A stretch of DNA of 64,000 bases from Phallusia mammillata (Eukaryota). The stretch lies in the NCBI GenBank assembly GCA_965637545.1, contig OZ281496.1, positions 8,494,001-8,558,000 of the forward strand, in the 5' to 3' direction. Within the stretch, counting starts at the first letter, position 1; each line of letters opens with the position of its first letter. Positions 9,215 to 60,962 of this stretch are shown piece by piece. The notes under the pieces were generated by a model. The model was given only the letters and a program-made list of their open reading frames with translations. It was not told where the DNA came from and made no database searches. A program made the position numbers and the translations under genes.

Positions 9215-10102
9215 TCACTGTTCGATATCAACTGTTTCACGCCGTGTCATAAATGACATAGGAAATTTCAATATTTCTTTCCACGTTTCGAACGTTAAAA
9301 CAAGAGCTACTAGGTTGCAAGTAATTGCTACTGCAAACAGCTCTACGTCCAAATACCTATTGACAACTATTGCTAGCATATCGGTTGAAATGCAAAGTAG
9401 GGTCATAAAAGCGGTCCTTTTTATCATTTGTAACACAGCAATGTCATTTACTCTATGCTGGGCGCATTTAAATGGATAGAAGAAAAGGAATAAAAGCAAG
9501 CACTGGCCTACAAAATCAATTGCACCTCCCGCTATCCAAGGCCACTTAACATTCCCAATAACATTTTTGCATCCATATCCAAATGATCGAAATCTTTGTG
9601 TAATAGAGTATCCAATGCAAGCAGTAAAGATGCCAAAAATCAGAAAGACAATGCTCGACCAACTTAGTACTTTAATCGAACTTTTGTAAAGGTGATTCAA
9701 AAGAGAACTTTTATAGAAGCAACGTTGTTTGAACCACAGAAATGTGTAAACTGTACAAAAACTGAAACCAAGCACCATGGGCATAATTTGAAGTAAAGTT
9801 TGACATGCGTACGTTGATCCTGAAATATAACCCATATTTAACATACATAGGTCAAGTACAGTGTATGTGTTCACTAAGATGGACGCTACACTTGTCAACA
9901 TATGCATAACCCGTACATTCCTATCTCCACTTTTGTACTTGTTGTGTGAACAACCATAAGCAAATATTGCAATAGTCAAGTAAATGGTAATGCATAGTGC
10001 AGTTGTGTCTATTATCAGCCAAACAATTCTTTGTGCAGGAAATTTAGTTGCACCCTTCGTTCTTGTATCGATGTCTGTGAGATTGGCAGTGTTTGAGTCC
10101 AT
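9215..10102 (-). CDS. Intronless 7TM GPCR-like protein, 295 aa (intact copy 1)
   Basis: Seven hydrophobic segments; N-terminal NxT sequon; Cys at the top of TM3 and in ECL2; family motifs YTFLWFKQR, LLLFLFxYPF, CISTD, FETW. Confidence 0.9.
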   Translation of the reverse strand: MDSNTANLTDIDTRTKGATKFPAQRIVWLIIDTTALCITIYLTIAIFAYGCSHNKYKSGDRNVRVMHMLTSVASILVNTYTVLDLCMLNMGYISGSTYACQTLLQIMPMVLGFSFCTVYTFLWFKQRCFYKSSLLNHLYKSSIKVLSWSSIVFLIFGIFTACIGYSITQRFRSFGYGCKNVIGNVKWPWIAGGAIDFVGQCLLLFLFFYPFKCAQHRVNDIAVLQMIKRTAFMTLLCISTDMLAIVVNRYLDVELFAVAITCNLVALVLTFETWKEILKFPMSFMTRRETVDIEQ

Positions 10103-10557
10103 CTTAAAGTTTCAGCAAATTCTAAAGCGTAGTACGGTTCTAAAACAATATCAGACTAAATGAAAGGTCAATGCATTCAATAATCAGGCCTACGAAAGCA
10201 GAAAAAGACAAATTACTTATGTATTTAATAAACATAAAAAAGTGCCCTAAACGTCGCTGCCAAACTCCTGGTTTCTGCACAACTAACTAACGCTAGAAAA
10301 TGTCAACCGCAGTTATGAGCACCACAGCATATACAAAGCAGTGCTTCCTTCTATCTAACAACTGTATACTCTTCCTGATTGTGTAATTTATCGGTCTGAC
10401 AACTGAAACACAGAAGTGAAACTTTGTAAGCCTTGTGCACAAGAGTTATGTCATGGAATTATTGTAACGAATTAGACATGAAGGTTTAATTTGCAACGGC
10501 TTATTTTCAATATTTCTCTGTGCTTTTGCGCTACCCATCGGTAATAAAAAAATGGAT

Positions 10558-10601
10558 AATCCTGATGAAGACGTCTTGTATAGGACGCCGAAACGTCGAT
10601 T
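10558..10601 (+). ncRNA. Minimal type I hammerhead ribozyme motif (PLE-type), intact core
   Basis: aatc-CTGATGA-a-[gacgtctt gtat aggacgcc]-GAAAC-GTC-gatt. Stem I aatc/gatt, stem II has one mismatch, predicted cleavage after C10597. Confidence 0.75.
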
Positions 10602-11560
10602 GTTTACAATAAAACTGCTGGATGAGGAATACTTGGTTATACATTATGTCTGGCAGCAATAGTCTATAATTATATCATAAATGGTCTGATGTTGGCAGGT
10701 CTACATATTTTTCGAGTATATTTGGAATTTGTACAGGGCATATTTAATTCGGCATGGTGCAGTTAAACGGTAGTTTCAGAAAAAAGAAAGAATTTTAGAC
10801 ATTTGGCCAAAATCTTGGATTCAAATTTAAACGCTGGTGGATGCTTCGGACTTTAATTCAACTCATCTCAAACCTGTAATCACGCAGAAACGTATAAGTA
10901 AGTTTTTTTTTAGTTAAAGTTTATTCGAAAATACGGATCAACCAGTGGTTCTCAATCTGTAGTACTCCGGAACTTTCCAGGTGGTACGTAAATTGCTTTC
11001 TACCATACTAAGTGTAAGGCATATCAAAAATTTCAACTCAACTGAACCAACTGATCAGCCGTGTTAGTATAAAACAATTGTCTTGGATCATGTTTTAGAA
11101 TTGCTAACTTTCTCTGTCTGGTCGTAGAAAAATAGATCACCTTCTGTTTTTTGTATTGCTACGTACCACCGAAATCCTGTTTGTACGGGTAGACCAAGAG
11201 ATAGGTTTACCTAGTACAGCATAGTTCTAAAACCAGTAAGCCATTGAAAGAGGGTTTCGGTGTTTGGCAGTTAGTACGCGATTCGTATAAGGCTGGTTCT
11301 TAAACAATAGCTGTACTTCAATTTATCAACACAACTTTGGAAGGTGAGTCGACCCGATCACCAACAATACCAGGATGTTTGTGCAATTAATTTATTGGTA
11401 GCAACATTTCATACACAATGCGACAAGTAGAAACCAAAAATCCGCATAGAGATATCACAACACTACAATAGATCGTTTCAAGAGAAACAGAAAACCAGGG
11501 TGCATGAAAACTACAAGCAATTAATGTGGACTATTAATAATGTAATGAAAACTAAACAAC

Positions 11561-12448
11561 TCAGTATTCAATATCAACTGTTTCACGCCTTGTGAAATGT
11601 GACAGAGGATACTTCAGTATATCGTTACAAGTTTCAAACGTTAAAACAAGAGCTAATAGGTTGCATGCAATTGCTGCTGCAAACAGCTGTACCTCCAGAT
11701 ACAAGTTAGCAAACATTGCTGCAATATCGGTTGAAATGCAAAGAAGTGACAAGAAAGCGCTTCGTTTCATCATTTGTAACCCGGCAATGCCATTTACTCC
11801 TTGCTGGGCGCATTTAAATGGATAGAGGAAAAGGAATAAAAGTATGCACTGTCCAGCTATATCAATTGAACTACCCACTAACAAAGGCCACTTAACATTT
11901 CCATCAACATATTTGCACCCATAGCCAAATGATTGATACCTTTGTGTAATCGAGAATGCAATGGATGCAGTAAATGTTCCCAAATTCAGGCAGACAATGC
12001 TTGACCAACTTAGTACTTTAATCCAACCTTTGTAAAGGTGATGTAAAAGTGAACTTTTATAGAAGCAACGTTGTTTATACCACAGAAATGTGTAAACTGA
12101 GCATAAACTAAAACCTAGAACAATGGGCGTGATTTTCATTAATATTTGACATGCACGCGTTGATCCTGGATTGAAGCCCACAAATATATAAGCTAAGTCA
12201 AGCACAATGTGTATGTTCACTAAGATAGACAATAAACTTGTCAACATATACATAACCCATGCATTCCTATCTCCACTTTTGTACTTGTTGTGTGAGGAAC
12301 CATAGGCAAATATTGCAACAGTTAAGTAAACGGTAAAGCATTCTGCAGTTGTGTCTATCATTAGCCAAGCAATTCTTTGTGGAGGAAGTTTGATGGCACT
12401 CTTCGTTCTTCGATCGATGTCTGTGAGATTGGAAATATTTGAATCCAT
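11561..12448 (-). CDS. Intronless 7TM GPCR-like protein, 295 aa (intact copy 2)
   Basis: Colinear paralog of 9215-10102 with the same length and motifs. Confidence 0.9.
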   Translation of the reverse strand: MDSNISNLTDIDRRTKSAIKLPPQRIAWLMIDTTAECFTVYLTVAIFAYGSSHNKYKSGDRNAWVMYMLTSLLSILVNIHIVLDLAYIFVGFNPGSTRACQILMKITPIVLGFSLCSVYTFLWYKQRCFYKSSLLHHLYKGWIKVLSWSSIVCLNLGTFTASIAFSITQRYQSFGYGCKYVDGNVKWPLLVGSSIDIAGQCILLFLFLYPFKCAQQGVNGIAGLQMMKRSAFLSLLCISTDIAAMFANLYLEVQLFAAAIACNLLALVLTFETCNDILKYPLSHFTRRETVDIEY

Positions 12449-12910
12449 GTTTAAGTTTCAGCAAATTCCCAAGCGTATACTACGGTTCTAAATCAATATT
12501 AGACTTTAATGTTCCGTCTAAAAAATCAACGCAGTCAATAATCAGGCCTACGTAAACAGAAATGAAGACAAAATACCTTTGAATTTAGCAAACATAAAAA
12601 ACATCATTAAGTCTCCTAGGTTTTATTGCTGCCAAATCAAGCCTGGTTTCTGCACGCAGTTATGAGCACCACAGCATATACAAAGCAGTGCTACCTTCTT
12701 TACCTAACCAACAACTGTATACTCTTCCTGATTGCGTAATTTATCGGTCTGACAACTGAAACACAGAAGTGAAACTTTGTAAGTCTCATGCACAAGAGTT
12801 TTGTCATGGCATTGTTGTATCGAATTAGACATTAAGGTTTGATTTACAACGGCTCATTTTCAATATTTGTCTGTGCTTTTGCGCTACCTTTTGGCAATAA
12901 ACAAACGGAT

Positions 12911-12952
12911 ATTCCTGATGAAGACGTTATATAGGACGTTGAAATGTCGATT
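12911..12952 (+). ncRNA. Degenerate hammerhead motif, paralog of 10558-10601
   Basis: CTGATGAag...GAAATGTC; stem II shortened and stem I mismatched. Confidence 0.5.
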
Positions 12953-14043
12953 GTTTACAATAAAACTGATGGATGAGCAACACTTGGTTACACATTATGT
13001 CTGGCAGCAATAGCTTATTTCATAAATGGTCTGATGTTGGTAGATCTACATATTTTCAAGTCTATTTGGGAATGTTTACGGGGCAGACTTAATTCGGCAT
13101 GGTGCATTAAAAACGTTAGTTTCAAAAACAAAGAATTTTTGACATTCACCAAAAATCTTGGATTCAAATTCAAACGCAGGTGGAAGCTTTGGACTTTAAT
13201 TCAACTCATTTTAAACCTGTATTCATGCAGAAACGTATGAGTAAGTTTATTTTAATTCAGTTTATTCGACAATGCATCTAAACCAGTGGCTTTCAATCGG
13301 TAGTACTCGTACCACCAGCGGTACGCCGAATTTTTCAGGTGGTACGGTAGTTTTATTCTGTCATACCAAACATGGTACAGTGCAGTTGTGTCTATCGTCA
13401 GCCAAACAATTTTTTGAGAGGAAAGTTAATAGTTTTCAAAGCCATATAACAAGCGGTTCCAATCACTAAATTAAACATTGACAAATCTAAATTTCGGGTT
13501 CAGGTCGAAACAACGGCACACTGACGTATGTGTTTCTGAGTTAGCTCTTGTGCGCAAGTGTCACCGAGTTTCACTCCTGTGTTTCAGTTGATTGATTGAA
13601 CGATCAACTTCACAATGAGGAAGAGTATTCCCCGTTTGTTATTTAAAGAAGGAAGTATGGCTGTGTAAATGCTGTGATGCTCATAGAGGTTTCATTTATT
13701 CCAACGTTAGTTAGTTTGTGCAGAAACCAGGCTTGGTTTGGCAGCAATTATTTCGTAAAGGTTTAAGCACCTTTGCATGTTTACAAAATAGAGTTAAGTA
13801 TATTTCTCGTCACATATTTTGCCACAAAAGTAGTAACGAATCACCAAGCCGTAAATGGATGCGCACATTTTTAATATGATACAGCGCAAAACAGTTTATG
13901 ACTGAAGTTGGCGGACAAATTAATTCCTTTTTTATGTTCACATAGGCCTGATTATAGAAGCTATTGATTTTTTGGACAGAATATTAAGTCTTATTTTGTT
14001 TTAGAACATTAGTGTACGTTTAGGAATTTGTTGAAACTTGAAG

Positions 14044-14433
14044 ATGGAATCAAACAGTTCCTATCTCATAGATATTAAAGAAAGAACCACGGGCGCAACC
14101 AAATTTCCTCCAGAAAGAATTGCTTGGCTGATGATAGACACAACTGCACTGTGTTTTACCATTTACTTGACTATTGCAATATTTGCCTATTGTTCACACA
14201 ACAAGTACAAAGTTGGAGATAGGAATGCACGGGTTATGTATATGTTGACAAGTGTAGCGTCTATCTTAGTAAACATATACACTGTGCTTGACATATCTTT
14301 TATCATTGTGGGTTACAAACCAGAAACTTCCCTTACATGTCAAACCCTAATAAGAGTTATGGCTATGGTGCTAGGTTTTAGTGCATTCACAGTTTACACA
14401 TTTCTGTGGTTTAAACAACGCTTAAAGTACTAA
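14044..14433 (+). pseudogene. 7TM-family gene truncated after TM3; inverted copy
   Basis: MESNSSYL...YTFLWFKQR, then a deletion to ttaaagtactaa and loss of homology. Its upstream module (13560-14040) is an inverted copy of 12450-12830. Confidence 0.85.
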
Positions 14434-14761
14434 TAAAATACTAAAATACTAATCGCATTCAAGAAGATTGGCGATAATCTTGATGTATATCCATTTACCT
14501 TTGTTTGTTTTTCAGACAGATAAATCGATCGCGGCATTCCGCGAAGACCAACAAAAAAAAACAAGCAAGAATCAATGCTATAAAAGTACATCAATTTTGC
14601 CTAAGAAATACATCTAAACAAAAAATGAAATTGGCTGGAATTTGATGCCCCTTTTCCCGCAGGAGACCTTGCAGGACGGCGATGCTGCTCAACTAGAAGA
14701 AATAGACGAAATGATTACTTCGCTGGAAAAAAAGTCAGTTTTCCAAATACGAGCACTGCAG

Positions 14762-17700
14762 TGATATGCTTCATACAGCTCACACACAAGTCTTTCAAAC
14801 TGTTTTCGTTTTAAGATTGTAGTTGGATAGTTTACCAAAAAACGTTACTGCCGTTTTCCAATAAATTCCAAAAACGATCAAATACAAACACAAAACTGCA
14901 TAAAGTTAAGTGTTGCCAATTTTGTATTCATGAAGCTTGTTTAGTGTAGGTTTGTCATGCGTTTAAAGAAATATCATTTTTAATAGGGTTGTTTGTGTTA
15001 CCTATCGGAACTTAGCTAAATGTTGGGCTGCCATGACCTATAGTTTCAATAGAGTTTTTATATATTATAAGCGTTGATTTTGTTGTAACTTATACTATGT
15101 TTTATTCTGTTCGCCACAAACTTGTTTTGAGTAAAGACTAAATCAAACGACACTGACGAAACTGAGACATAGTTTCACTTCCCGTTTTACAATTTATCAA
15201 GCCCGTTTGTTAATGAGCATCGAGGACGCTCTTCGCCTGCTTCTATGTTAATATAAAGTGGAATATAAAGCTCATACGCTGTTTTAACTTCGGGCTTGCA
15301 CAGGTTAAAACGTTAGGTCGAACGAATTCTGGACAAGAAACAAATATTTTTTATGAGTTTTATGGGTTTTTTCGGGTCCACTTTGGGTTCGTACCGTCTT
15401 TGAGCCTTATTTGTTTTTGACAGACGGGCTTGATTCGGGCCTGACGTCAAATTCTCTGTCAGCAATTTTTCAATGAAATGAGTTACAAACAACTGTGCTT
15501 GAACAAAACGAATTTCTCGTATTGGCGCCTGTGTGCAAGGCATGCAAGGGAAGGAAACAATCGCACGGCCAATCGATTTTCATTAGCGAGTGCGTACTGG
15601 GCACAAACCAAATGTAAAGTCATTTGACCTAATCCTTCCAGTTTGCTCGTTTATCGTTGGGTGCGGCCAAGCTTCATTAAAGCCAGACATTTTGAAGCAG
15701 TTATTTCAAAGCAACTAACGTATTGTGCTGAGTTGTGTTGAATCTATTTAGCTTTCTGAAAGAGCATATAGCGACACAATGACATTAAACAATCACTAAG
15801 CCGACAATAGCTGCACAACGTTGAAATGTAAATGGCACAATAGGTAGATACGGCTTAGCGCGCTGCAGCTATGTCTGCACTGTATTGTAAAGATTTAGGT
15901 TGTGGCAGCTTATAAGGGAGTGATCTTTGCGCACCGTGAGTATAACAACATTGGGCATTATTTGATTTCTTGTTTGTCAAGGTTTGTTTGCAAATAAAGG
16001 AGATAAATTTGGTAAGATTACGTGTATTTGCTTTACAGTTGTAATGTTCAGTTTGTTAAAGGGACTACAACAGGATTTGTTTTGAATTTAATAGGCGTAG
16101 TTTTGTTTGTGTTTTACCTTACAGTTTGTGGTTAACTTAAAAAACAAGCCCTTATTTTAAGGACTTGAAGTGGTCAAAACCTATATATTGTAAAAAAGAG
16201 AAGCAACACAAACAAGTGAAGTTGTTTAAACAACTATTGAAACGAGAAAAAGTAATATTTTGGTATTGACAAAGATAAAATGGACACTTGTGTGAAAACT
16301 GCAACCAAAGAATTTAAATGCAATTTGTGTAAAAAATCATTTACTCGGAAGTACACTCTGAAACAACATGTTGCTACACACAGTGGAGAAAAACGCTATC
16401 AATGTGAGGTATGTCAGAAAAAAGTTTTCACTAAAGCACTTTTGAAAGCACACATGCTGACACACTCCGAAAGAAAAAGACCGTATAAGTGTGAAATTTG
16501 TGAAAAAGGTTTTCTCTCAGCTTCTGAATTGAAAAGACACGAGGTATCTCACACTGGCGTTAAACCATACAGTTGCGACATTTGCGAAAAGAAGTTTCAA
16601 ACTTCAGGACATGTAAAGCAACATATGAGATGCCATTTAGAGGAACGACCATACAAGTGTCAGCTCTGCGACAAAAGTTACACCCATTCTTCACACCTTT
16701 CAAGACACATGCTTCATCACACCAAGCAACAACGACACAAGTGTGGAGTGTGTGAAAAATCTTTTGCAGAGAGAAAGAATTTGGACATACATCTTAATGT
16801 GCACATGGGTCTTAAACTGCATAAGTGCACTATATGTCAGAAGGCATTTAGTTACCCAAGAACTCTAAGAAACCACATACTTACTCATAGTGAAGTAAAA
16901 CCTCACAAGTGTAAGTTTTGTGAAAAAGAGTTTGCGTGGAGAAATGGTCTCAATAAACACATGTTAAGTCATAAAGAAGAAAAACTGTTTAAATGTCCTT
17001 CTTGTGGAAAAGAATTCCATCATTTTCAAAGTTTAAAGCGACACAGCTTGACACACTCAGGAATAAAGGCTCACCAGTGTGACATTTGTGAGAAAAAGTT
17101 TGCCCTTTTGGCGACATTGAAAAGACACCGAGAAGTTCACTTTGGCAAAAAAAACTTTCAATGTAAAGTTTGTAAAAGATACTTTACACGACTTGACAAC
17201 TTAAAAGGGCACTTGGAAAAAACTAACAATGGTCGATGTGCCGAAATTTTGTATGACATCAACCTTTAATACTGTCAAACATTATGTCATTAAATATATC
17301 CACTAGTAATTCGAAATTTCTACAGATATATGTAAACCAATCCATAAAAATCACTGTCATTAAAGCATGTATTTGCAGAATTTCTTCTAAATATCGTTGA
17401 AATATGTTTGCGTCACATTTTTACATTTTTTGTATAGTGTTTCCTAATGTATTTTGTTTTCAAATCCGTCAATTCTTCGTTCTTACTTCCATAAAATCTC
17501 GTTCACTTCATTAGATAATATTGTCGCGAAAAGAAAAACACATTTAAAAAAAATAGATACTGAAAATCAGACTTAGCTAAAAAGACTAGTCTGAATTATC
17601 GTTGGAGATTTGACATACATAACATGTCGTTAATTTCTAATTCGGACTAAATGGTTTGTTTCAAACCACCGAATGTAGTTTATACAGTGCCCACGCAACC

Positions 17701-19203: not shown

Positions 19204-19603
19204 TAAAATACAAGTTCTTGAAAACAACAACTATTATTTTATTTAGCATTACGCCAGTTGAACGAAATAATTTATTAGATATGGTCTGATGTTAGAAGGT
19301 CTGACATACTTTTCGCGTCTATACGGGAATGCTTACAAACAGGCTTAATTCCGTACGGCGCCTTCAAAACGATACTTTCAGCGAAAATGATGTTTGATTA
19401 TCAGCGGTCATCTTTGATTCCAATCTAAACGAAGTCGGATGCTGGCAACGGATTTTGATACAGAGAAACTTCAACCTGTACTGATTGAGAAACGTAAGTT
19501 TTCAGAAAAGTTTATTCCAAAATCCCCTTAAATCTAGGCCTGCTATAATTTGACAGTACAACAGTTGAATGTTAGTCGACCCGAACATCAACAACAATAA
19601 CCG

Positions 19604-19863
19604 GATGTTGAAATGCAATGAAGTGACATAGAAGCGGTCCTTTTTATCATCTGTAACCCGGCAATAATATTGCTGAGCGCATTTAAATGGATAGACGAAA
19701 AGAAATAAAAGCAAGCACTGTCCTGTTATATCAGTAGCACTTCCCGCTAACAAAGGCCACTTAACATTACCTTCAAAACGTGTGCACCCGAACCCATAAG
19801 ACTGCTATCTTTGTGTAATAGAGTATGCAATGGATGCAGTAAATATTCCAAAATTCAGAAAGA
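19604..19863 (-). pseudogene. 7TM-family fragment (TM4-TM6)
   Basis: Encodes LAGSATDITGQCLLLFLFVYPFKCAQQ; truncated at both ends. Confidence 0.8.
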
Positions 19864-19954
19864 TCTGGCGATCCCCTACTACGAAGCTGACGTGTGCAGC
19901 ACACGAGGCAGGCAACGGTGCTGGTGATTCGACTTTCGGCGGATTCTCCACTGA

Positions 19955-21033: not shown

Positions 21034-21921
21034 TCAGTGTTCGATATCAACTGTTTCACTACGTGTCAAAAGTGACATGGGACACTTCAATATTTTTTTA
21101 CAAGTTTCAAATGTTACAACAAGAGCTAATAGGTTGCAAGTACCTGCTGCTACAAATAGCTGTACCTCCAGATACAAGTTAGCAAACATTCCTACAATAT
21201 CGGTTGAAATGCAAATAAGTGACAAGAAAGCGCTTCGTTTCATCATTTGTAACCCGGCAACGCCATTTACTCCTTGCTGGGCGCATTTAAATCAATAGAG
21301 GAAAAGAAATAAAAGTATGCACTGTCCAGCCATATCAATTGAACTACCCACTAACAAAGGCCACTTAACATTTCCATCAACATATTTGCACCCATAACCA
21401 AATGACTGATACCTTTGTGTAATCGAGCATACAATGGATGCAGTAACTGTTTCCAAATTCAGGCAGACAATGCTTGGCCAACTTAGTACTTTAATCCAAC
21501 CTTTGTAAAGATGATTTAAAAGTGAACTTTTATAGAAGCAACGTTGTTTAAACCACAGAAATGTGTAAACCGAGCATAAACCAAAACCTAGAACCATGGG
21601 CGTGATTTTCATTAAGATTTGACATGCACGCGTTGATCCCGGATTGTACCTCACAAAGATAAAAGCTAAGTCAAGCACAATGTGAATGTTCATTAAGATA
21701 GACAATAAACTTGTCAACGTATACATAATCCATGCATTCCTATTTCCACTTTTGTACTTGTTGTTTGAGAAACCATAGGCAAATATTGCAATAGTCAAGT
21801 AAATGGTAAAGCATAGTGCGGTTGTATCTATGATCAGTCAAGCAATTTTTTGATTGGAAAATTTGGTTCTGCTGTTTGTTCTTTCTTCGATGTCTGTGAG
21901 ATTGGAAGTGTTTGGTTCCAT
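21034..21921 (-). pseudogene. Full-length (888 bp) 7TM-family gene with two in-frame TGA stops
   Basis: ATG at 21921; Trp28->TGA (21838-21840) and Pro210->TGA (21292-21294); no frameshift. Confidence 0.9.
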
Positions 21922-22301
21922 CTTCAAGTTTCAGCAGATTTGAAAACGTACTAAATCAATATGAGATTTAATGTTCTGTCCGAAAAGTCTGTACATTGAA
22001 TAATCAGGCCTACGTAAACAGAAATAAGACCAATTACTTTTGTTTTTAGTAAACATAAAAAGGTGCCCTAAAAGTCATTAAGTCTCATAGTTCAATACTG
22101 CCAAACCAGGCCTTGGTTTCTGAATACACTAACTAACGTTATACAATGCCAACCGCAGTTATGAGCACAGCATATACAAAACCATGCTTCCTTCAACACA
22201 CAAACGTCGGATACTCTTACTTATTGTAAAGTGTATCGGTCTGACAATCAACTGAAACTCTGCAACACCTGTGCACAAGGGTTACTTCAGAGACACATAT
22301 G

Positions 22302-23855: not shown

Positions 23856-26560
23856 CAGTGGCGTAGCCAGGGGGGGGGCCAAAGGGGCCATGCCCCCCCC
23901 CAAATTTTTTGAAATTGTACTCATCAAAAATAAATGTGCTATATCCATTTTTTAATTGTTTGTTTATGACTGAATAACTGAGAGAATGTTAACTAAATTG
24001 CCAAACAATGATTATTATCGAACAACAATGGTCATTTACACATTGGCTTTGGCATTAATGAGTGTAAGAGTGACTTGTATTTAGTTGGCTTTGGTGATAG
24101 TCTTGTTGAAGTAATATAGCAAAACATACGAGAAATAGCAAGAAGTATAAATAGTAAATACCAAATATTATAGTTTATTGCGATGTCTAAACCAAAACAA
24201 GCAAGATTGGATGCATTTTTTTCTTTAAAAAATAAAGATCAGCAGTCCTTAGAGGAAACACCTGTTACGCCCAGTGTTAGCAGTGTTAGAGTTACTCAGG
24301 AAATAAGAACAACAGACGATCTTGGATTTATTATGAAACACCATTCGCGGTTAGCCGATGATGAGAGGTATAGACTTCTAACATCTGATGGTATAAAAAA
24401 CGTCCCGCTTCTTGATACTATTAGGCAAGGTCGCCGCAAGTTTCTCAAAGTTTGGCTCGATGATGATAGGTTTTCGGATTGGCTGATGTACACTCAATGC
24501 TCTGATGGGGGCGGTTTGTGCAAGATTTGTGTTCTGATGCAAGTACGTTTAAAACATGGCAATCTCACTAACGCTGCTTTTAACAAACCTTGCACTCACT
24601 TCAAAAAATTCATCGAAAAGGCTGTTGCTCATCGTGATGCTGGTTACCATCGACAAGCAACTTTAGAAGCAAAAAGTTTTCTAAGAAGCATGGAAACTAA
24701 CCAAAATGTATCTGCGAGCCTGGATTCAGAATATTCCAGACAAATAAAGGAAAATCGAAACATAATGGCTTCCATCGTTAAAACGGTGATGTTCTGTGCT
24801 TCAAACAACATATCTTTGCGAGGCCATTCGGTAGACAACGGAAACTTTATGAACCTTCTTAAATTTCGCATCGACGCCGGGGACGAAACTTTAAAAAGCC
24901 ATTTTACTCACATGGCTGGTAATGCTAAATACACTAGCCCGACGATACAAAATGAAATTCTGGGTTTAGCAAAAGGTCTAATTGTTCAAGACATAGTCAC
25001 TGATGCCAACCAATCGTTTTTTTCTGTAATAGCCGATGAGTCTTGTGATATATCAGGAAAGGAACAGCTAAGCATTGTTTTGAGATACACGAAAGCTACA
25101 GAAGTGTATGAGAGTTTCATCGGTTTTGTTGAAATGAACTCGGTTTCAGCAGAATCGATTTCTACAAGTATTTTTGTCTCACCTTACCAGCACAGGATTG
25201 GATTTACAGAAACTTGTCGGACAAGGCTATGATGGAGCGTCAACAATGGCAGGTCACGTGAGTGGTGTGCAGAAGCGGATTCGCGACAAGTACCCTCGTG
25301 CATTATTTGTTCACTGTGCTGCGCACTGTTTAAACTTGGCTATAAATGATCAAAGTAAAGTTCCAACCATCAGAAACACCTGCGACATTATTAGAGAGAC
25401 CATCCGTTTTTTTAGAGAAAGTCCTAAAAGACGCACATGTTTAGGACTTAACATCCCGTTGTTCTGCCCTACCAGATGGTCCGAAAAATACAAAAGCATT
25501 CGAATCTTCAAATGTAATTTTAAACGTATACTCGAATCACTTGGCGCCTTGGAGTGTGATTTCAGCGGTGATACAAGAGCAAAAGCATTTTCGTTAAAAT
25601 GTGCTCTGGAAAAGTCTGGAGTTACTTACGCCGTGTGTTTGATTGGGCGATTTTCGGCACTCATTGAACCGTTGGCGCGGAAGCTTCAGGCTGTCGGAGT
25701 ATGTGTGCCAGATGTGAAAAACTTAATCACTTCTCTTCAAAACGTTCTATCTCAAAAACGCATAAACTCGGACACTGCGTTGGATATTTACAAAGAAGCT
25801 TGTGAAGTATTAAATGTACAACAGCTGACTACACCCAGAATAGCCGAGAAACAAGTTTATCGCGACAACGTCAACGCAGAATCTGGACCGCAGTATTTTT
25901 ATCGTGCAGTGTATATTCCTTACATCGAAGGTCTGAGTAGTTCGCTTCACGAACGATTTAGTGACAATTCCTCATTTTTTAATTTGCTATCGATCATTCC
26001 ACCCAACAAACCAACCAAGTTAGATGAGATTGAGCGTTTATATTGTTTAGATAACCTTGAGAGCGAAGTTATTCTGTGGAGATCTTCTCTAAGCTCTCAA
26101 CTCAAACCCGAATGTTTTCATGAACTTCTTTTGAGCGCAAACGACTATCCAAGCGTTCGCAACATAGTCCAGATCATAATGGCGTTGCCGGCAACAACTG
26201 TTGAAGCTGAACGTTCTTTTTCGTGTATGAAGCGGGTCAAGACATGGTTGCGCTCAACGATGACTTCCGATCGCCTTTCAGATATATGTGTGCTGCATTG
26301 TCATCATGAAAAAATCAGCGAGGAAAAGATCAATCAGATTGTGTCAAATATGGCTGGTAGTAGGCGAAGGATGAACTTTTAATCATACCGTTGTGTGCAG
26401 CTAAAGCAATGAAGATAATTTTTTTGTGTAATTTGCCTCAGAAAAATTGCTGTTTGTGGGCACAACTATGTCGTTTTTCGTTCTCGTTGAATGTTATTTT
26501 ACTTGTAAAAAGTCACAAAATATTGGCCCCCCCCAAAATTTTCCGCTGCCTACGCCACTG
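23856..26560 (+). mobile_element. Full-length hAT transposon, 2705 bp
   Basis: TIRs cagtggcgtagccag / ctgcctacgccactg; 8-bp TSD GTTCGGGT. Confidence 0.95.
24183..26382 (+). CDS. hAT transposase (DUF4371 + hATC dimerisation, THAP12/ZMYM1-like); one frameshift in T-run 25171-25175
   Basis: IADESCDIS, GQGYDGASTM, VHCAAHCLNL, PTRW and EAERSFS motifs. Confidence 0.88.
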
Positions 26561-30684: not shown

Positions 30685-31140
30685 TCAGTGTTCGATATCA
30701 ACCGTTTCACGCCTTGTCAAAAGTGACAGTGGATACTTCAATATATCGTTCCAAGTTTCAAATGTTAAAACAAGAGCTAATAGGTTACAAGCAATTGCTG
30801 CTGCAAATAGCTGTACCTCAAGATACAAGTTAGCAAACATTGATACAATATCGGTTGAAATGCAAAGAAGTGACATAAAAGCCGTTCGTTTCATTATTTG
30901 TAACCCGGCAATAATATTTACTCCTTGCTCAGCGCATTTAAATCGATCGAGGAAAAGAAATAAAAGCAAGCACTGTCCTGCTATATCAATGTTTTTTCTG
31001 ACAAAGGCCACTTAACATTGCCTTCAAAATGTGTACACCCAAACCCATTGATATCTTTGTGTAATATAGTATGCTAATGCATGCAGTAAATGTTCCAAAA
31101 TTCAGGCAGACAATGCTCGACCAACTTAGGACTTTAATCC
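30685..31140 (-). pseudogene. 7TM-family 3' fragment
   Basis: DIAGQCLLLFLFL...FETWNDILKYPLSLLTRRETVDIEH, with an internal deletion. Confidence 0.85.
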
Positions 31141-34290: not shown

Positions 34291-34318
34291 TTTATTACAA
34301 TGCATTTGTACTCTAAAC

Positions 34319-49872: not shown

Positions 49873-50526
49873 TAAACTGGACAACAGAGTCACCACTCAT
49901 ATCAGGAATACGGCTGTTCACAAACACGAATGCAAGAGCATTGCACGCGTGTTAAGGAATAACGGTTTCCCACGTAACTTGCACCACATGATACATAACA
50001 CAACCACCTCACAAAACAGACAGTTTAAATCGTTCACTTGCCTACCATACGTCCAGGGTGTATCAGAGCGCCGCAAACGAATCTTGAACGACGCTGGGTA
50101 AAAGTGGCAATAAAACCTTTCAAAACAATTGGACAGCTGCTACCAAAACCTAAAGATGCCAGCACTATACCACAACATCGTACAGGAGTTGTTTACCAGG
50201 TCCCTTGTCGTGATTGTAATATGGTATACATTGGCCAAACTAAGCGAAATCTAAATTCACGCCTCAAGGAACACAAAGTGGCAGTCAAAAACACGGACGT
50301 CAACAAGTCCGCCTTATGCAAACATGTTTTGGAATGTGATCACCGCATTAATTGGAACGATGCCCAAATTTTGAAACAAGAACCGAATTGGTCGAAAAGA
50401 TTGGTCTTCGAAAGTTGCCTCATAAATTCTAATTCAAATGTTTTAAAACCCAACGATTGCAAAAGCCTGAGCCCAGTTTTCCGCGACATTTTGCGTCCGG
50501 CTTCCCCATCAAATATCGGACATTAG
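49873..50526 (+). pseudogene. PLE RT C-terminus and GIY-YIG endonuclease (frameshifted)
   Basis: GVVYQVPCRDCNMVYIGQTKRNLNSRLKEH...LCKHVLECDHRINW...LVFESCLI. Confidence 0.9.
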
Positions 50527-50831: not shown

Positions 50832-51719
50832 ATGGAATCAAACACTTCCAATCTCACGGACATAGAAGAAAGAACGCAAGGCGCAACCAAATTTCCTCCT
50901 CTAACAATTGCTTGGCTGACGATAGACACAACTGCACTGTGTTTCACCATTTACTTGACTATTGCAATATTTGCCTATGGTTCTTCACACAACAAGTACA
51001 AAAGTGGAGATAGGAATGTACGGGTCATGTATATGTTGACAAGTGTAACTTCTATTTTAGTCACCATATACAATGTGCTTGACATATGTTTAATAAATGT
51101 GGGTTACATTCCCGGATTAACGCATGCATGTCAAACTTTATTGAAAACCATGCCTATACTTCTAGTTGTGAGTTTATGCTCAGTTTACACATTTCTGTGG
51201 TTTAAACAACGTTGCTTCTATAAAAGTCCTCTTTTGAATCACCTTTACAGAGGATGGATTAAAGTACTAAGTTGGTCATGCATTGTCTTTCTGAGTTTTG
51301 GCATGTTTGCTACTCTCATTTCATTATTGATTACACAACAAGGAGTTCGGTCATTTGGTTATGGGTGCCGAAATGTTGATGGAAAAGTGTGGCCTTTGAT
51401 AGCAGGAGTTGCATTTGATTTTGGGGGCCAGTGCTTACTTCTTTTTTTATTTCTTTATCCATTTAAATGCGCTCAGCAAGGAGTAAATCACATTGTCATG
51501 TTTCAAATGATCAAAAGGACTGCTTTTATGTCACTTTTTTGCATTTCAACCGATGTTATAGCAGTTATTGTTAATAGGTGTTCGGACGTAGAGCTGTTTG
51601 CAGTAGCAAATACTTGCAACCTATTAGCTCTTGTTTTAACTTTTGAAACGTGGAAAGATATGATAAAATATCCTCTGTCACTTTTCACAATGCGTGAAAC
51701 TGTTCATATCCAACAATGA
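50832..51719 (+). CDS. Intronless 7TM GPCR-like protein, 295 aa (intact copy 3)
   Basis: Same motifs as copies 1 and 2. Confidence 0.9.
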   Translation: MESNTSNLTDIEERTQGATKFPPLTIAWLTIDTTALCFTIYLTIAIFAYGSSHNKYKSGDRNVRVMYMLTSVTSILVTIYNVLDICLINVGYIPGLTHACQTLLKTMPILLVVSLCSVYTFLWFKQRCFYKSPLLNHLYRGWIKVLSWSCIVFLSFGMFATLISLLITQQGVRSFGYGCRNVDGKVWPLIAGVAFDFGGQCLLLFLFLYPFKCAQQGVNHIVMFQMIKRTAFMSLFCISTDVIAVIVNRCSDVELFAVANTCNLLALVLTFETWKDMIKYPLSLFTMRETVHIQQ

Positions 51720-51991: not shown

Positions 51992-52055
51992 GGACCAGGC
52001 TCCGGTGACAGTAATGTTTCCGCGACTCACGCTTTACCAACTGAGCTACACAGGT
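51992..52055 (-). repeat. Degenerate second copy of the tRNA-like element
   Basis: Reverse complement acctgtgtagctcagttggtaaagcgtgagtcgcggaaa, preceded by the same ~70-nt leader as 19864-19954. Confidence 0.7.
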
Positions 52056-52799
52056 TCCGAATCACAAGCACCGTTGCCTGCCTCGTAAGCATATGATACC
52101 TTCGTAGTAGGGGATCGCCAGATTGATGGACTATTTTTTACATAAAGGGTATGCAATGGACGCTGTCGTTTATTCAAAATTGCTAATAATTACCATTCTT
52201 GTTTGCGGTGCCGCATCAAAGCACAATAAGAGGATTGATACGACTAAACGGTAGTTTTTTTTAACAATGATACAGTAAACCAACGGACAATAAAAACCCT
52301 TGGTATCAACGAATCAATATGTATTTCGCCTATGTGGCATCATCAGTTCCTGGAAATTGAAATACATTACGATTTTTTTTGTTTTTTTTTTATCTATAAC
52401 CGTTTTTATCTTTAAGTCTTTATAAATAAAGCAGCGATATTAAACTTTCGGCGGGAATTTAATCACCCTTTTCCCGCGAGAGATCCGTTTGTTTTTAGAT
52501 GTTGTACGACCGTACAGCACGAACATAGTTTGCTATAATCGTTGTCGAGTTCAGTTAGGTTTTGCTCTTAAACCGCATTTGAAAGTTTTCTAAAATTGCC
52601 ACATAACTCTTTACATTAAATCTTAAGACGTTCAACTTTTGGAACGTGATTCTGTTGTGAGCATTAGTTTGTATGAACGTAGATCCATAACAGGAAGCAT
52701 CTCGTAAGAGTTCATCTCTGTTCGATATTAACAAATAGTTGTACCTCTAAATAGAAGTTGCCAATTATTGCCACATTATCGGTTAAAATGCATAGAACT

Positions 52800-53450
52800 G
52801 ACATGCATGCGGTTCGTTTGATCATTTGTCACCCGGCAATGTTATTTACTCTTTGCTGAGCGCATTTAAATGGATAGAGGAAAAGAAATAAAAGTAAGCA
52901 CTGGCCTGCAAAATCAATTGCACTTCCCCCTAACAAAGGCCACGGTACAATTCCACCAACAAAAGTACACCCAAACCCATAAGACTGATATTTTTGAGTA
53001 ATCGAGTACCCAATGCAAGAAGTAAATATTCCCAAACTCAAAAAGACAATGCTCGACCAACTTAGTACTTTAATCCATCCTTTGTAAAGGTGATTTAAAA
53101 GAGAACTTTTATGGAAGCAACGTTGTTTAAACCACAGAAAGTATAAACTGTGCAAGCACTACAACCTAGCACCATGGGCATGATTATTATTAAGGTTTGA
53201 CATGTAAACGATGATCTTGGTTTGTAACCCGCAATGATAAAAGATATGTCAAGCACAGTATATATGTTCACTAAGATCGATGCTACATTTGTCAAAATAT
53301 ACATTACCCGTGCATTCCTATCTCCACTTTTGTACTTGTGTGAGGAACCATAGGAAAATATTGCAACAGTCAAGAAAATGGTAAAACATAGCGCAGTTGT
53401 GTCTATTATCAGCCAAGCAATTCTTTGTGGATGAAGTTTGGTTGCAATCT
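52800..53450 (-). pseudogene. 7TM-family gene, frameshifted and truncated at both ends
   Basis: ORF pieces 53095-53547 and 52829-53155. Confidence 0.85.
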
Positions 53451-54043
53451 CCGTTCTGACATAAACTGTTTTGAGCTCTATTACGTTAAAAATATTCGCA
53501 TCTATTTTTTTTCGGCTTAGTGATTCTTCAGTGCTATTGTGTCGCAATACATGATTCTTAAAAGCAAAACAGACTCAACTCAACTTAAGTAGTTAGAAAA
53601 CATGACGCTTGTGCACAACAGTTACGTCAGAGACACATATGCCAGTGTTGTATTGTTAAAAATTAAAACGGAAATTTAGAAACTCTCAAAGAGTTGTTTG
53701 GCTGACCGTCAACACAACTGTACCGTCTCAAGTTTATTATGAATACTCGTGAACCACCTGAAAAGTTCGTCGTACCGCTGGTGTTACGAGTACTAAAGAT
53801 TGAGAACCACTGGTTTAGGTGTATTATAGAATAAACATTAACTAAACAAACTTACTCATACGTTTCTGCATCAATACAAGTTTAAGATGAGTTGAATTAA
53901 AGTCCGAAACTTTCACCTGCGTTTGAATTTCAATCCACTATTTTTGCTAAATGTTAAAATTTATTATGTTTACTTTTTGCTGAAACTATCGTGTTGAAGG
54001 CGCCATGTCGAATTTGATCTGTCTCGTAAACATTCCCATAGAG

Positions 54044-54853: not shown

Positions 54854-55142
54854 CCATAGAGACTCGAAAAATATGTAAAAAGGAAGTATGGCTTTGTATA
54901 TGCTGTGATGCTCATAACTGCGGTTGACATTGTCTAGCGTTAGTTAGTTGAGCAGAAATCAGGTTGAGTTTGGCAGCGACGTTTAGGGCACTTTTTTATG
55001 TTTACTAAATACATAAGTAATTTGGCTTTTTCTGCTTTCGTAGGCCTGATTATTGAATGCATTGACATTTCGGACAGAACATTAAGTCTGATATTGTTTC
55101 AGAACCGTAGTATCCGCTTTAGAATTTGCTGAAACTTTAAGA

Positions 55143-55250
55143 TGGACTCAAACATTGCCAGTCTCACAGACATCGATGCAAGAACGAAGGGTGCAACTAA
55201 ATTTCCTGCACAAAGAATTGTTTGGCTGACTGCACAACTGCACTATGCTC
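55143..55250 (+). pseudogene. 7TM-family 5' fragment
   Basis: MDSNIASLTDIDARTKGATKFPAQRIVWL, cut off by the TIR-like cagtgccggattaacc. Confidence 0.8.
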
Positions 55251-57984: not shown

Positions 57985-59385
57985 CAGCTGCGCGAGTTTT
58001 TGCTTGAAGCAAACAGCCTTAGATTTTGGTCAAAAAATTTCAATGCACAAGCGTCTTCGGTCGTCAGAAGAAATTTTTACGTGGACGACTGTCTGACTTC
58101 GGTTGCATCTATAGAGGAAAGGGTTCAATTGACCAAACACATTTGTTGTCACGTGGAGGATTCCACTTGACAAAGTGGTTCAGTGATAACCAGAAGATTT
58201 TGTCAAAAATTCCTGAAGAAGAGAGGTCAAAGGCAGTGCGAAACAAAAGCTTGAGTGATGACTTCACAGAGAGAGTTCTTGGTGTCCACTGGAACGTGCA
58301 TGAAGATACGTTTGGATTTAAAGTCAACCTTCCTGAAACGGCGAAGACTCGAAGAGGGATTCTTTCTGCATTGAGTTCACTGTACGGCCCTCTTGGATTC
58401 GTGGCACCGTGCACGCTTGGAGCAAAATTGTTACTCCAAGGTCTGTGCAAATGTGGAGTTGGCTGGGATGACTGCATTTTGGAATCGGAAGCAACACTGT
58501 GGAGAGAATGGCTTGGGCGTTTACCGAAGCTTCATGACCTGTGTCTTCCTCGTTGTTGTAAGCACTAAGATTTCGGCGTTGTGCAAAGTTGGGAGTTACA
58601 CCACTTTGCAGATGCTTCCTCCGTGGCCTACGGAGCCGTGTACTATCTGAGGATGGTTGACGTTGGTTCGCGTGTTCATTGCGTGTTTCTTGTTGGCAAG
58701 TGCCGACTAGCGCCGCTGAAAACAGTGTCAATTCCTAGACTTGAACTGACTGCGGCGGTTTTATCCGTAAAGCTAGATGAAATGATGCGACGATAGCTTG
58801 GCTTACCAGTGCATCGGTCTGTGTTTTGGACAGACTCCACTGACGTCCTGCAGAGCATCAGAAATTCGAGGAAAAGATTCCTTACGTTCGTTGCCAATCG
58901 AATTGCAAAGATCGAAAGGCAAAGCGATCCTTCAAGCTGAAGACATGTCCCTTCAAAGCTTAATCCGGCGGTTGAGGCGTCACGCGGGTTGACGTCGGAG
59001 GCGTTAGTGACGTCCGGCCGCTGGTTGCGCGGTCCGCAGTTTTTGTTGGTATCTGAAGATCAATGGCCTGTGAGTCCGATTGTTTTACCCGACTTACCTG
59101 CTAAGTTCAGTCTCATAAAAAGGCAGGAAGTATCCATACATACGGTTGTAGAGAAGCAGTCCATTGTTGAGAGGATCATCCATCGGTACTCTTCGTTGCA
59201 TCGTTTGAAAAAGAGTATTGCATTGTTGCTTCGATATCAGAAATTTTTACTGTCGCGTGTTCGGCGGGGCAAGGCTGTGGTGGAGAATCGTGGATCTTTA
59301 TCTGTTGAAGAATTAATTGCTGCCGAACTGGAGTTGATCAAACATATGCAGCGAAAGCATCTGATTCTGTTGCCACAGCTGAATT
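57985..59385 (+). mobile_element. Decayed BEL/Pao LTR retrotransposon pol fragment (RT C-terminus, RNase H)
   Basis: [34 protein letters not shown] and [10 protein letters not shown], with stops and frameshifts. Confidence 0.9.
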
Positions 59386-60080
59386 TTGGTAGGTGGCGCA
59401 AAAAGCTGAATTATTTATTTAGCTGTCAAAAAGGTGTAGGGGCAGGAAAAAAAGTTTTAGGTTAGTTTTTTGGATTTCATTGATAATTCCATTACTCAAC
59501 TTAAAAAGCCTAACCGTTGGCATTTTTAGAGATATATCTATTTATATTTGGTTTTAGTGCTCTTTGTATCACCTGTGGGAATTTGGCTAAATGCTGGGCT
59601 ACTGTGAGGTATAGTTTCAATAGATTGTCCTCATTTTTAAGTGTTGATTTTGTTGTATACTATGTGTTATTCAGTTCGCCACAAACTTGTTTTGAGTAAA
59701 TACTAGATCAAAGGACACTGACGAAACTGTGATGTAGTTTCACTTCTCGTTTTACAATTCACCAATGGCGCCTGTTTATTAATGAGCATCCGGACATTGT
59801 TGGTTAAAAGATGAACTCTCTTCGCTTGCTTCTATCTATTGTGGGTTGGTATACAGTGGCGAAAAAGATAGCAAAGCGCAAAAAAGTGGTGAGCACAATT
59901 GGTGGATTGCTGAGCACGCTGCTGCTACACAGTATTAGAAAGCGAATACAAAAGTAATTTGTCTCCCGTTTTCAGTTGGCCTACGCCTGATTATTAAATG
60001 TATTGACTTTACAGACAGAATAGTGAGTCATTTTTTGATTGAGAACTGTAGTTATTTTTGAATTTTACTGAAACTTGAAA

Positions 60081-60962
60081 ATGGAATCAAACATTTCCAA
60101 TCTCACAGACATCGATGTAAGAACGAAGGGTGCAACCGAATTTCCTCCACAAAGAATTGCTTGGCTGATGATAGACACAACTGCACTATGTTTTACCATT
60201 TACTTGACTGTAGCAATATTTGCCTATGGTTCCTCACAGAACAAGTACAAAAGTGCAGATAACAATGCTCGGGTTGTGTATATGTTGACAAGTGTAGCGT
60301 CAATCTTAGTGAACATATACACTGTGCTTGACATCAGTTATATGAATGTTGGTTACATTGAAGGATCAACGTATGCATGTCAAACTTTAATAAAAGTCAT
60401 GCCCGTGGTGCTGGCATTTAGTCTCAGTTCAGTTTACACATTTCTGTGGTTTAAACAACGCTGCTTCTATAAAAGTTCTTTGTTGAATCACCTTTACAAT
60501 GGTTGGATTCAAGTACTAAGTTGGTCGGGCATATTCTTTTTGAATTTAGGAATATTTACTTCTTGCATTGGATATTCTATCACTCAAAGAGTTCAGTCAT
60601 TGGGGTATGGATGTAAATTTGTTGGTGGAATAATATCGTGGCCTTTGTTGGCGGGAAGTGCGATTGATATAGCAGGCCAGTGCATACTTTTATTCCTTTT
60701 CCTCTATCCATTTAAATGCGCTGAGCAAGGGGCAAATATCATTGCCGGGTTACAAATCATCAAACGAACCGCATGTATGTCAGTTCTATGTATTTCAACC
60801 GATATTGTAGCGATACTTGCTATCTTGTATCTGGAGGTACAGCTATTTACAGCAGCAATTACTTGCAACCTAGTAGCTGTTGTGTTAACGTTCGAAACGT
60901 GGAACGATATGTTAAAATACCCTCTGTCACTTTTCACAAAGCGTGAAACAGTTGATATCTAA
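60081..60962 (+). CDS. Intronless 7TM GPCR-like protein, 293 aa (intact copy 4)
   Basis: ATG at 60081; same motifs as copies 1-3. Confidence 0.9.
   Translation: MESNISNLTDIDVRTKGATEFPPQRIAWLMIDTTALCFTIYLTVAIFAYGSSQNKYKSADNNARVVYMLTSVASILVNIYTVLDISYMNVGYIEGSTYACQTLIKVMPVVLAFSLSSVYTFLWFKQRCFYKSSLLNHLYNGWIQVLSWSGIFFLNLGIFTSCIGYSITQRVQSLGYGCKFVGGIISWPLLAGSAIDIAGQCILLFLFLYPFKCAEQGANIIAGLQIIKRTACMSVLCISTDIVAILAILYLEVQLFTAAITCNLVAVVLTFETWNDMLKYPLSLFTKRETVDI

Follow-up and report, generated by a model that had tools for sequence, protein, structure and literature searches.

Tunicates are the closest living relatives of vertebrates, and their larvae select settlement sites. Tunicates lack OR, V1R, V2R and TAAR genes; more broadly, no chemoreceptor family of vertebrates, insects or nematodes is present in them (PMC2396169, PMC7776563). 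That they have no vertebrate-type OR genes, as stated in an earlier note on the DNA studied here, is found in the literature. Johnson et al. 2020 (EvoDevo, PMC7397655) described the closest known system, the "large tunicate-specific 7TM family", and already suggested for it a chemoreceptor role, as a possible OR substitute, so the chemoreceptor idea for this family is not new. Its one characterised member, KH.C3.516 of Ciona robusta, is specific to the axial columnar cells of the papilla, where KH.C3.516::GFP lies at the exposed apical tip (PMC7397655). These cells are a contractile, not classically neuronal, type, which counts against a chemoreceptor reading.

We analysed a window of 64,000 nucleotides from Phallusia mammillata. 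The ORF list contains four intact single-exon 7TM genes, each a 295-aa ORF, on both strands. For gene D, the program-made ORF (60075-60962, 295 aa) begins at a TTG at 60075, and the likely ATG lies at 60081. Searching the window by tblastn and six-frame reading located eight broken pieces in addition. The features are as follows.

9215-10102, minus strand: gene A, intact, single-exon, 295 aa; 72% identical to gene C and in the clade found in this genome only
11561-12448, minus strand: gene B, intact, single-exon, 295 aa
14038-14430, plus strand: truncated copy, residues 1-130, ending just past the FLWFKQR (TM3) motif and followed by stops
19603-19864, minus strand: fragment, residues ~152-243, with a frameshift/deletion
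21037-21927, minus strand: full-length pseudogene; its two in-frame stops replace W30 and the invariant P210
30688-31138, minus strand: C-terminal fragment, residues ~143-295, in three frames (frameshifts)
31191-31649, minus strand: fragment, residues ~84-239, with one stop
32234-32509, minus strand: N-terminal fragment, residues 2-83
50832-51719, plus strand: gene C, intact, single-exon, 295 aa; its protein was used for the AlphaFold model
52733-53508, minus strand: broken copy, residues 1-258, with a frameshift near residue 120, in-frame stops and the 3' end gone
55139-55231, plus strand: stub, first 31 residues only
60081-60962, plus strand: gene D, intact, single-exon, 293 aa from the ATG

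The pieces at 31191-31649 and 32234-32509 are probably one copy split by ~0.6 kb, because they lie on the same strand at that distance and their query ranges (84-239 and 2-83) abut. Counted in this way, the eight pieces would represent about seven broken copies. The earlier note had described four intact and at least seven broken copies in both orientations, intronless and forming a birth-and-death array; the ORF list, tblastn and six-frame reading bear out the counts, orientations and single-exon coding sequences, and the wider array and the tree described below support the birth-and-death dynamics. The pseudogene at 21037-21927 is 82% identical to gene B and has an omega of 0.62 against that gene.

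The window is only part of a larger array. This extends over ~188 kb (C3:8.489-8.678 Mb), exceeds the window at both ends and holds roughly 10 intact copies and more than 20 broken pieces. Further clusters lie elsewhere in the genome, which contains at least 122 matches to the family. In a tree built with FastTree, the copies in the window fall in a clade made up of copies of this genome only (support 100), which marks the clade, as judged from the sequences, as a lineage-specific expansion. Transposons abound in the region, and in the window broken copies outnumber intact ones.

Copies resemble one another only over the ORF and a few hundred further bases, and no terminal repeats were seen around the copies when these were compared. 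Directly upstream of gene C lies a Penelope-like GIY-YIG ORF (50038-50523), and similarity between gene C and the other genes ends ~59 bp before its ATG. Evidence for expression of the window genes is weak, consisting of low-depth contigs from runs guessed to be RNA. Over gene B, such contigs come from three studies (11637-12517), and none has a splice joint. Its 3' flank (10997-11714) is covered in two runs of one study (X1, X2), likewise RNA by guess. For gene A, contigs of possibly-RNA runs cover the 5' end alone (9980-10425).

A family profile retrieved 1,313 public cluster representatives. Among the best 150 of these, all named relatives come from Ciona, Styela, Phallusia or Clavelina and are uncharacterised proteins, and KH.C3.516 itself is absent. 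Many matches lie on eukaryotic contigs in metagenome assemblies, the host being unknown. The family is conserved over three ascidian orders, and one paralog is 99.7% identical to a deposited Phallusia mammillata protein record, in line with the ascidian origin that the earlier note had raised as a condition. The tie to the published family was made with short motif probes and with P0025. P0025 carries exact peptides of the published KH.L25.4, with which it is about the same, and it matches the profile at E 6e-68 and gene C by BLASTP at E 2e-17 and 3e-6. The motif Y-x-x-L-W-x-R-Q, read by eye, is common to all 12 published Ciona sequences. Judged by these resemblances, the window genes are assigned to the 7TM family that Johnson et al. 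2020 described as tunicate-specific (KH.C3.516, PMC7397655).

The clade in the window is at most ~35% identical to any public protein among those retrieved. Some branches of the family are conserved one-to-one across Phallusia-type, Ciona and Clavelina genomes (L065-P0025, 55% identity; L066-P0065), and a single-exon paralog adjoins P0001 of Ciona. Homolog searches by word index, run with gene C and also with the family alignment, gave nothing useful, because the family diverges too fast for shared 5-mers. A literature search on the NCBI locus names found nothing, and a 2026 paper on taurine chemotaxis does not deal with the family. The family had been called an orphan. This holds in that it belongs to no curated family, but not in the stricter sense, given 1,313 public relatives and one paper (PMC7397655).

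The intact proteins are predicted to have a GPCR-like architecture. The AlphaFold model of gene C (pLDDT 90.3, pTM 0.88) shows seven helices in a bundle, an ECL2 hairpin and a helix 8, and hydropathy gives seven hydrophobic segments in the window proteins. Across 54 family members, cytoplasmic loops carry 7.2 K+R versus 1.9 for extracellular loops, and by the positive-inside rule 47 of the 54 have an N-out/C-in topology. A short N-terminus with an NxT/S sequon is present in 47/54. The TM3 cysteine (C100) is found in all 54 and the ECL2 cysteine (C179), which lies within the modelled hairpin, in 53. Residue 125, which belongs to a W-x-[RK]-Q-R motif closing TM3 on its cytoplasmic side, is basic in every member, and the TM7/H8 turn reads [ST]-F-E-[TS]-W. 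A DRY-like string occurs anywhere in the protein in just 7/54 members and NPxxY in one, whereas YTFLWFKQR, LFxYPF, CISTD and FETW are all found in the window proteins. The 7TM nature, short N-terminus with its sequon, cysteine pair and motif replacements described in the earlier note were all recovered.

Searches against known families place the proteins in no GPCR class. A Pfam scan covering the four window proteins, 50 paralogs and 10 public relatives turned up chance-level matches only; even with E values up to 10 allowed, the PF00001 (7tm_1) profile matched none of the 54 members and none of the public relatives. PDB sequence searches with a single protein and with the family profile found no relative; hence neither Pfam scans nor PDB sequence searches yielded a sequence link to any GPCR class. 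Foldseek of the model against the PDB gave no match at E <= 1e-3, and the fold matches tie across 7TM classes, GPCRs not being favoured over microbial rhodopsins, Ste2 and TMEM87A. An Atlas fold search returned generic 7TM rows, and the Atlas named-cluster search returned fungal DUF7703 alone (0.86). No window protein has a lysine in TM7 (the family mean of TM7 K+R is 0.19), and they consequently have no retinal site.

The intact copies are under relaxed purifying selection, with an omega of 0.46 (CI 0.38-0.56) that is significantly below 1. Change is about twice as fast in the extracellular half as in the intracellular one (outer dN 0.232, omega 0.59; inner dN 0.109, omega 0.32; p = 0.0012), and the claim of a conserved intracellular side is upheld. 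Differences cluster in ECL1 and ECL2 and in the outer halves of TM2, TM3 and TM6. Of the variable sites named earlier, ECL1, ECL2 and TM2 (its outer half) thus stand, but TM5 does not, being the most conserved helix (dN 0.108, omega 0.20). In no larger region does omega reach 1, so no positive selection was detected at that scale. The pattern had been likened to odorant- or taste-type repertoires; the faster outer half agrees with this, but faster ligand-side change also occurs among ordinary, non-chemosensory receptor paralogs.

We read the window, at roughly even odds (about 0.5), as part of a young lineage-specific tandem expansion of tunicate 7TM receptors that forms a chemoreceptor-like repertoire. 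The features of such a repertoire are present: it is large, tandem and pseudogene-rich, with lineage-specific expansions and a ligand-facing half that evolves faster. The expansion would grow by local duplication in a transposon-rich region, copies being lost to stops, frameshifts and truncation. The proteins would be cell-surface receptors, whose rapidly diversifying outer pocket may bind varied, probably external, ligands and whose conserved inner face may relay the signal to one shared transducer, for which a heterotrimeric G protein is the simplest candidate. They would then operate like a chemoreceptor repertoire. A more specific version is doubtful: that the family arose within tunicates as a class of G-protein-coupled chemoreceptors of its own and replaced OR, TAAR and V1R/V2R, the array in the window being a Phallusia-lineage expansion tuned to settlement or feeding cues.

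Other readings share part of this evidence. Diversification of the outer half suits any ligand-binding receptor, and it is conceivable, if unlikely, that the proteins receive internal or conspecific signals such as fast-evolving peptides, neurotransmitters of neighbouring neurons, or gamete or colony recognition cues. Johnson et al. considered that the ligand of KH.C3.516 might be a neurotransmitter (PMC7397655), and the one-to-one branches (L065-P0025, L066-P0065) are as expected for receptors of conserved ligands. A species-restricted clade with many pseudogenes, however, is unusual for receptors of endogenous ligands. Somewhat less probable still is that these are seven-helix proteins signalling without G proteins, whether a channel, a transporter or a trafficking factor of the TMEM87/GOST or GPR180 type. 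Several features are receptor-like, namely the conserved cysteines of TM3 and ECL2, the ECL2 hairpin, helix 8 and the basic residue where TM3 meets the cytoplasm, and KH.C3.516::GFP sits at the apical cell tip (PMC7397655). The window proteins also lack both the TM7 lysine of a retinal site and the N-terminal GOLD or lumenal domain of the TMEM87/GPR180 type, and housekeeping 7TM proteins are not typically found in large, pseudogene-rich, fast-diverging arrays.

That the ORFs are decaying repeats or transposon cargo, open by chance, is very improbable, even though the region is filled with transposons, the majority of the window copies are broken and the overall omega of 0.46 is high. For a neutral ORF of 885 nt, the chance of remaining open falls from P ~0.02 at 10% divergence to 0.001 at 18%, yet ~10 copies are intact; on this and on the confidence interval of omega, chance was rejected. 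The confinement of conservation to the ORF and its near flanks and the lack of visible terminal repeats also speak against this reading, as do the presence of the family in three ascidian orders and that of a paralog as a deposited Phallusia protein record.

The earlier pointer to this family was one paper on a single Ciona gene. Added here are the genomic matches (at least 122), the pseudogenes within tandem arrays, clades restricted to one species, an inner face that is conserved and an outer half that changes fast, and a confident GPCR-like model, so that the family offers concrete genes and sites for the study of tunicate chemical sensing. Should the chemoreceptor idea prove true, the family would represent a new class of receptors, and chemoreception would have had a separate origin within chordates; otherwise the family still ranks among the largest uncharacterised membrane-protein families in ascidians.

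Several known systems resemble the window proteins in part. Insect odorant and gustatory receptors (7tm_6/7tm_7) were rejected as relatives, their type being N-in whereas 47/54 members here are N-out, the sequon is N-terminal and there is no Pfam match, and microbial (type I) rhodopsins were ruled out by the missing retinal-binding lysine in TM7. Fungal class D Ste2 and fungal DUF7703 fall in the generic 7TM score range, share few features (127-140/256), have no sequence match and serve as a lead only. Nematode Sr* receptors (Srg, Srh) likewise form very large 7TM families that evolve fast, are confined to one lineage and combine a GPCR-like topology with the lack of class A motifs, and one Atlas neighbour cluster bears the automatic name 'Serpentine receptor class gamma'. 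The nematode genes, in contrast, are intron-rich, and the Pfam Sr signal is one chance-level Srh match in 1/54 members.

With class A GPCRs the window proteins share the N-out seven-helix bundle, the TM3/ECL2 cysteine pair, the ECL2 hairpin and helix 8, together with a basic residue 25 positions past the TM3 cysteine, the position of R3.50. Unlike class A GPCRs (PF00001), they give no HMM match and lack DRY, NPxxY and CWxP; the 69 PF00001 matches in the genome all lie away from the loci of the family, and the fold similarity of the window protein to class A GPCRs is no better than to non-GPCR 7TM proteins. The likeness to vertebrate odorant receptor genes lies in the single-exon coding region and the tandem arrays with pseudogenes. 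Compared with many Ciona members of the KH.C3.516 family the window proteins are shorter (295 aa), with minimal ICL3 and C-tail, and their clade is a separate expansion confined to this genome. Otherwise the two have in common the 7TM topology, the tandem arrangement, the lack of a curated family, named members that, among the best 150 matches, are all tunicate, and the motifs Y-x-x-L-W-x-R-Q-x-x-Y, G-C in ECL2, C-x-x-x-D in TM6 and [ST]-F-x-[DT]-W at the TM7/H8 turn.

The 64-kb window holds four intact family ORFs and, as found by tblastn with the four intact proteins together with six-frame reading, eight further family pieces on both strands. Two of the pieces adjoin in protein coordinates (residues 2-83 and 84-239) and therefore probably represent a single copy split by ~0.6 kb.

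Family copies inside the window (intact copies from the ORF list; all others from tblastn and six-frame reading)
9215-10102, minus strand: intact ORF, 295 aa (gene A)
11561-12448, minus strand: intact ORF, 295 aa (gene B)
50832-51719, plus strand: intact ORF, 295 aa (gene C)
60075-60962, plus strand: intact ORF, 295 aa (gene D); probable ATG at 60081
21037-21927: full-length copy with two in-frame stops
52733-53508: frameshifted copy
14038-14430: N-terminal stub
55139-55231: N-terminal stub
32234-32509: N-terminal stub, residues 2-83
19603-19864: internal or C-terminal fragment
30688-31138: internal or C-terminal fragment
31191-31649: internal or C-terminal fragment, residues 84-239

The earlier note had counted four intact and at least seven broken copies; the four ORFs are present and the pieces amount to about seven copies. 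The motifs that it quoted are found in the window proteins, and it was right that DRY and NPxxY are missing as a rule (DRY-like strings in 7 and NPxxY in 1 of 54 family members).

Searched in six frames, the full 240-Mb genome yielded at least 122 family matches. The window forms the middle of an array on contig C3, from ~8.489 to 8.678 Mb, in which about ten genes are intact and over twenty pieces are broken. More clusters, of diverged paralogs (20-45% identity, almost all unbroken ORFs of ~290-510 aa), lie on contigs C1, C2, C3 (19 and 24-28 Mb), C4, C5, C7 and C8. In a FastTree phylogeny of 227 rows (proteins of <250 or >620 aa and the public relatives P0157 and P0158 excluded), the window copies formed a clade of sequences from this genome only (support 100), nested in a larger 20-row clade likewise restricted to this genome (support 100). 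Together with the mixture of intact and broken copies, this bears out the birth-and-death array that had been proposed. One-to-one pairs occur on other branches: the paralog L065 with Ciona P0025 (55% identity) and L066 with Clavelina P0065. The window proteins share at most about 35% identity with any public protein retrieved.

Non-functional repeats were rejected as an explanation by this census, with its roughly ten intact array genes, and by the selection analysis. Among the ten intact close paralogs (median dS 0.37, median dN/dS 0.47), pooled omega was 0.46 (bootstrap CI 0.38-0.56), and a simulated neutral ORF of the same length stayed stop-free at 10% divergence with P ~0.02. Since the interval lies below 1 and the simulated probability is low, the intact genes are kept by selection, weakly. 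When outer and inner halves were assigned from the AlphaFold model, the outer, extracellular half had dN 0.232 and omega 0.59 versus 0.109 and 0.32 for the inner, intracellular half (permutation p = 0.0012), as expected from the claim of a conserved intracellular side. ECL1 and ECL2 changed fastest, together with the outer halves of TM2, TM3 and TM6. Variability had been ascribed to TM2-ECL1, ECL2 and TM5; this stands for both loops and outer TM2 but not for TM5, which is the slowest helix (omega 0.20). In no region of useful size did omega exceed 1 among these paralogs, giving no sign of positive selection.

The proteins show seven hydrophobic segments by hydropathy. The AlphaFold model of the gene C protein, built with the 54-paralog alignment as input, is confident (pLDDT 90.3, pTM 0.88), with helices at 23-52, 61-91, 97-131, 141-171, 187-216, 221-251 and 256-269; the second extracellular loop forms a beta-hairpin, and a helix 8 follows at the C-terminus. 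C100 (top of TM3), W123, Q126 and P210 are invariant in the alignment, and 53 of its 54 sequences have C179, which lies in the ECL2 hairpin. Residue 125, Arg or Lys in all 54, lies 25 residues past the TM3 cysteine, counted per class A numbering; W-x-[RK]-Q-R may thus stand in for D-R-Y, judging from sequence position.

No Pfam match was found in the 54 paralogs and 10 public relatives scanned, and neither single-sequence nor profile searches revealed a PDB sequence relative. Every match listed by Foldseek against the PDB was a 7TM protein (best E 7e-3, TM ~0.55), none at E 1e-3 or better. These results point to a predicted seven-helix bundle of GPCR/rhodopsin type without class assignment, so that the 7TM claim holds for the fold, by hydropathy and model, but not for any specific class. 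A retinal-binding role is unlikely because TM7 of the window proteins lacks a lysine. The genome has 69 PF00001 matches, none at family loci. One class A receptor exon (PF00001, E 4e-39; C3:19229586-19230107) lies <4 kb from a cluster of long family members (L059, L060 and L063, 372-446 aa, C3:19.23-19.26 Mb); the two are probably neighbours only.

An exhaustive profile search matched 1,313 public cluster representatives at E <= 1e-3, of which 591 reached E <= 1e-30. Among the best 150 of the 1,313, all named matches were ascidian 'uncharacterized protein' entries, the ascidians listed being Ciona intestinalis, Styela clava, Phallusia mammillata and Clavelina lepadiformis. Many other matches are eukaryotic contigs in metagenome assemblies with host not identified, so the family may not be confined to tunicates. 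The earlier note's proviso, 'if this is an ascidian', is settled by paralog L033, which shares 99.7% identity with P. mammillata CAB3262857.1 and so places this genome in that species or in one very closely related to it. Ciona P0001 is a single-exon gene adjoined by a single-exon paralog; Ciona P0025 contains introns. Three public relatives (P0019, P0083 and P0162) are far longer than the 7TM core (583-1191 aa): P0019 has ~345 additional N-terminal residues without a Pfam match, and for Styela XP_039272024.2 (1191 aa) a single gene model seems to span two tandem genes.

The family has a published member, Ciona KH.C3.516, which Johnson et al. (2020, PMC7397655) class as an orphan 7TM gene 'of unresolved phylogeny'. 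It is the second most enriched transcript of the axial columnar cells of the papilla, its expression there is specific by in situ hybridisation, and a GFP fusion concentrated at the exposed apical tip (PMC7397655). By eye, a Y-x-x-L-W-x-R-Q-x-x-Y signature is present in 12/12 Ciona sequences of that paper's supplement. P0025 corresponds to KH.L25.4 (a short probe matched and more exact peptides agree), and matches both the family profile (E 6e-68) and gene C (E 2e-17 plus 3e-6). These matches and the common signature identify the window family as the published tunicate family, linked via KH.L25.4 rather than by alignment with KH.C3.516. Among the later papers searched, the family figures only through KH.C3.516 as a marker. 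The orphan chemoreceptor proposal keeps its orphan part, in that the family lacks a Pfam match, but the same hypothesis was already in print (PMC7397655). The window array is a new, lineage-specific subfamily array within a family whose functional hypothesis was previously published; the literature link, species assignment, structural model, selection pattern and census are added here.

The runs that contain the window stretch all derive from one organism, and ten of them are small contig sets whose RNA status is only guessed. Low-depth contigs from three studies, placed on 9000-12700, cover the gene B ORF, and those of two runs of one study (X1, X2) extend ~560 bp into its 3' flank with no splice joints; AATAAA occurs 165 nt and 636 nt past the stop. 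The contigs are compatible with low-level unspliced transcripts, though not proof of them. Gene A has contig coverage at its 5' end only. Between the two genes, contig depth was very high at 10559-10662 (as much as ~560) in 4/4 runs compared, with loose ends on both sides; this short stretch is probably either a piece of an abundant repeat or a highly expressed element.

Similarity between window copies reaches at most ~865 bp upstream and ~290 bp downstream of the ORF. Among the copies lie an LTR retrotransposon, two hAT elements, a PIF/Harbinger element, a Penelope-like GIY-YIG ORF, BEL/Pao fragments and C2H2 zinc-finger genes.

Other features among the copies
1506-6062, plus strand: C2H2 zinc-finger gene, apparently split by the LTR retrotransposon
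1506-1979 and 5595-6062: ORFs matching the N- and C-terminal halves of the zinc-finger ORF at 16280-17269
2578-5397: RT-RNaseH-integrase ORF, 939 aa, between the two halves
16280-17269, plus strand: intact zinc-finger ORF, 329 aa
28035-28556: third, more diverged zinc-finger paralog
24183-26382, plus strand: hAT-type transposase gene (DUF4371 and hAT dimerisation domain)
42633-44427, minus strand: hAT-type transposase gene (same domains)
37052-37975: PIF/Harbinger DDE_Tnp_4 ORF
50038-50526, plus strand: Penelope-like GIY-YIG ORF, adjoining gene C on its 5' side
10103-10252 (minus), 12449-12598 (minus) and 59931-60080 (plus): regions with a conserved block of ~100 nt just 5' of the ATG of genes A, B and D

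Both hAT transposase genes are divided into a pair of overlapping ORFs, which points to a frameshift in either gene. Genes A and B have ~865 bp of upstream sequence in common; that of gene C loses similarity to the other genes ~59 bp before the ATG, which argues that the Penelope-like element replaced most of the upstream region and left the ORF intact. In A and B the conserved block carries a pyrimidine-rich run that ends with AG (TTTCGTAG|GCCTGATTATT), a possible acceptor site for the splicing or trans-splicing of a 5' leader.

The window family is best read as a surface receptor repertoire. The diversifying outer pocket would bind varied ligands, and the conserved inner face, with W-x-[RK]-Q-R, L-F-x-Y-P at the end of TM5, C-x-x-x-D in TM6 and F-E-T-W at TM7/H8, would signal to a shared transducer, probably a G protein. 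The proteins might instead be receptors for internal or conspecific signals, or 7TM proteins acting without a G protein; ligand binding, G-protein coupling and a chemosensory role are the parts of the receptor repertoire reading that we infer. Tunicates lack OR, V1R, V2R and TAAR genes, as the earlier note had stated for vertebrate-type ORs, and their own chemoreceptors are unknown (PMC2396169, PMC7776563). Across the family, Lys and Arg total 7.2 in the predicted cytoplasmic loops versus 1.9 in the extracellular loops, a bias that indicates N-out in 47 of 54 sequences, and 47/54 family members carry an N-terminal sequon. Both features argue for an N-out/C-in topology, the same as in GPCRs and opposite to that of insect odorant receptors.
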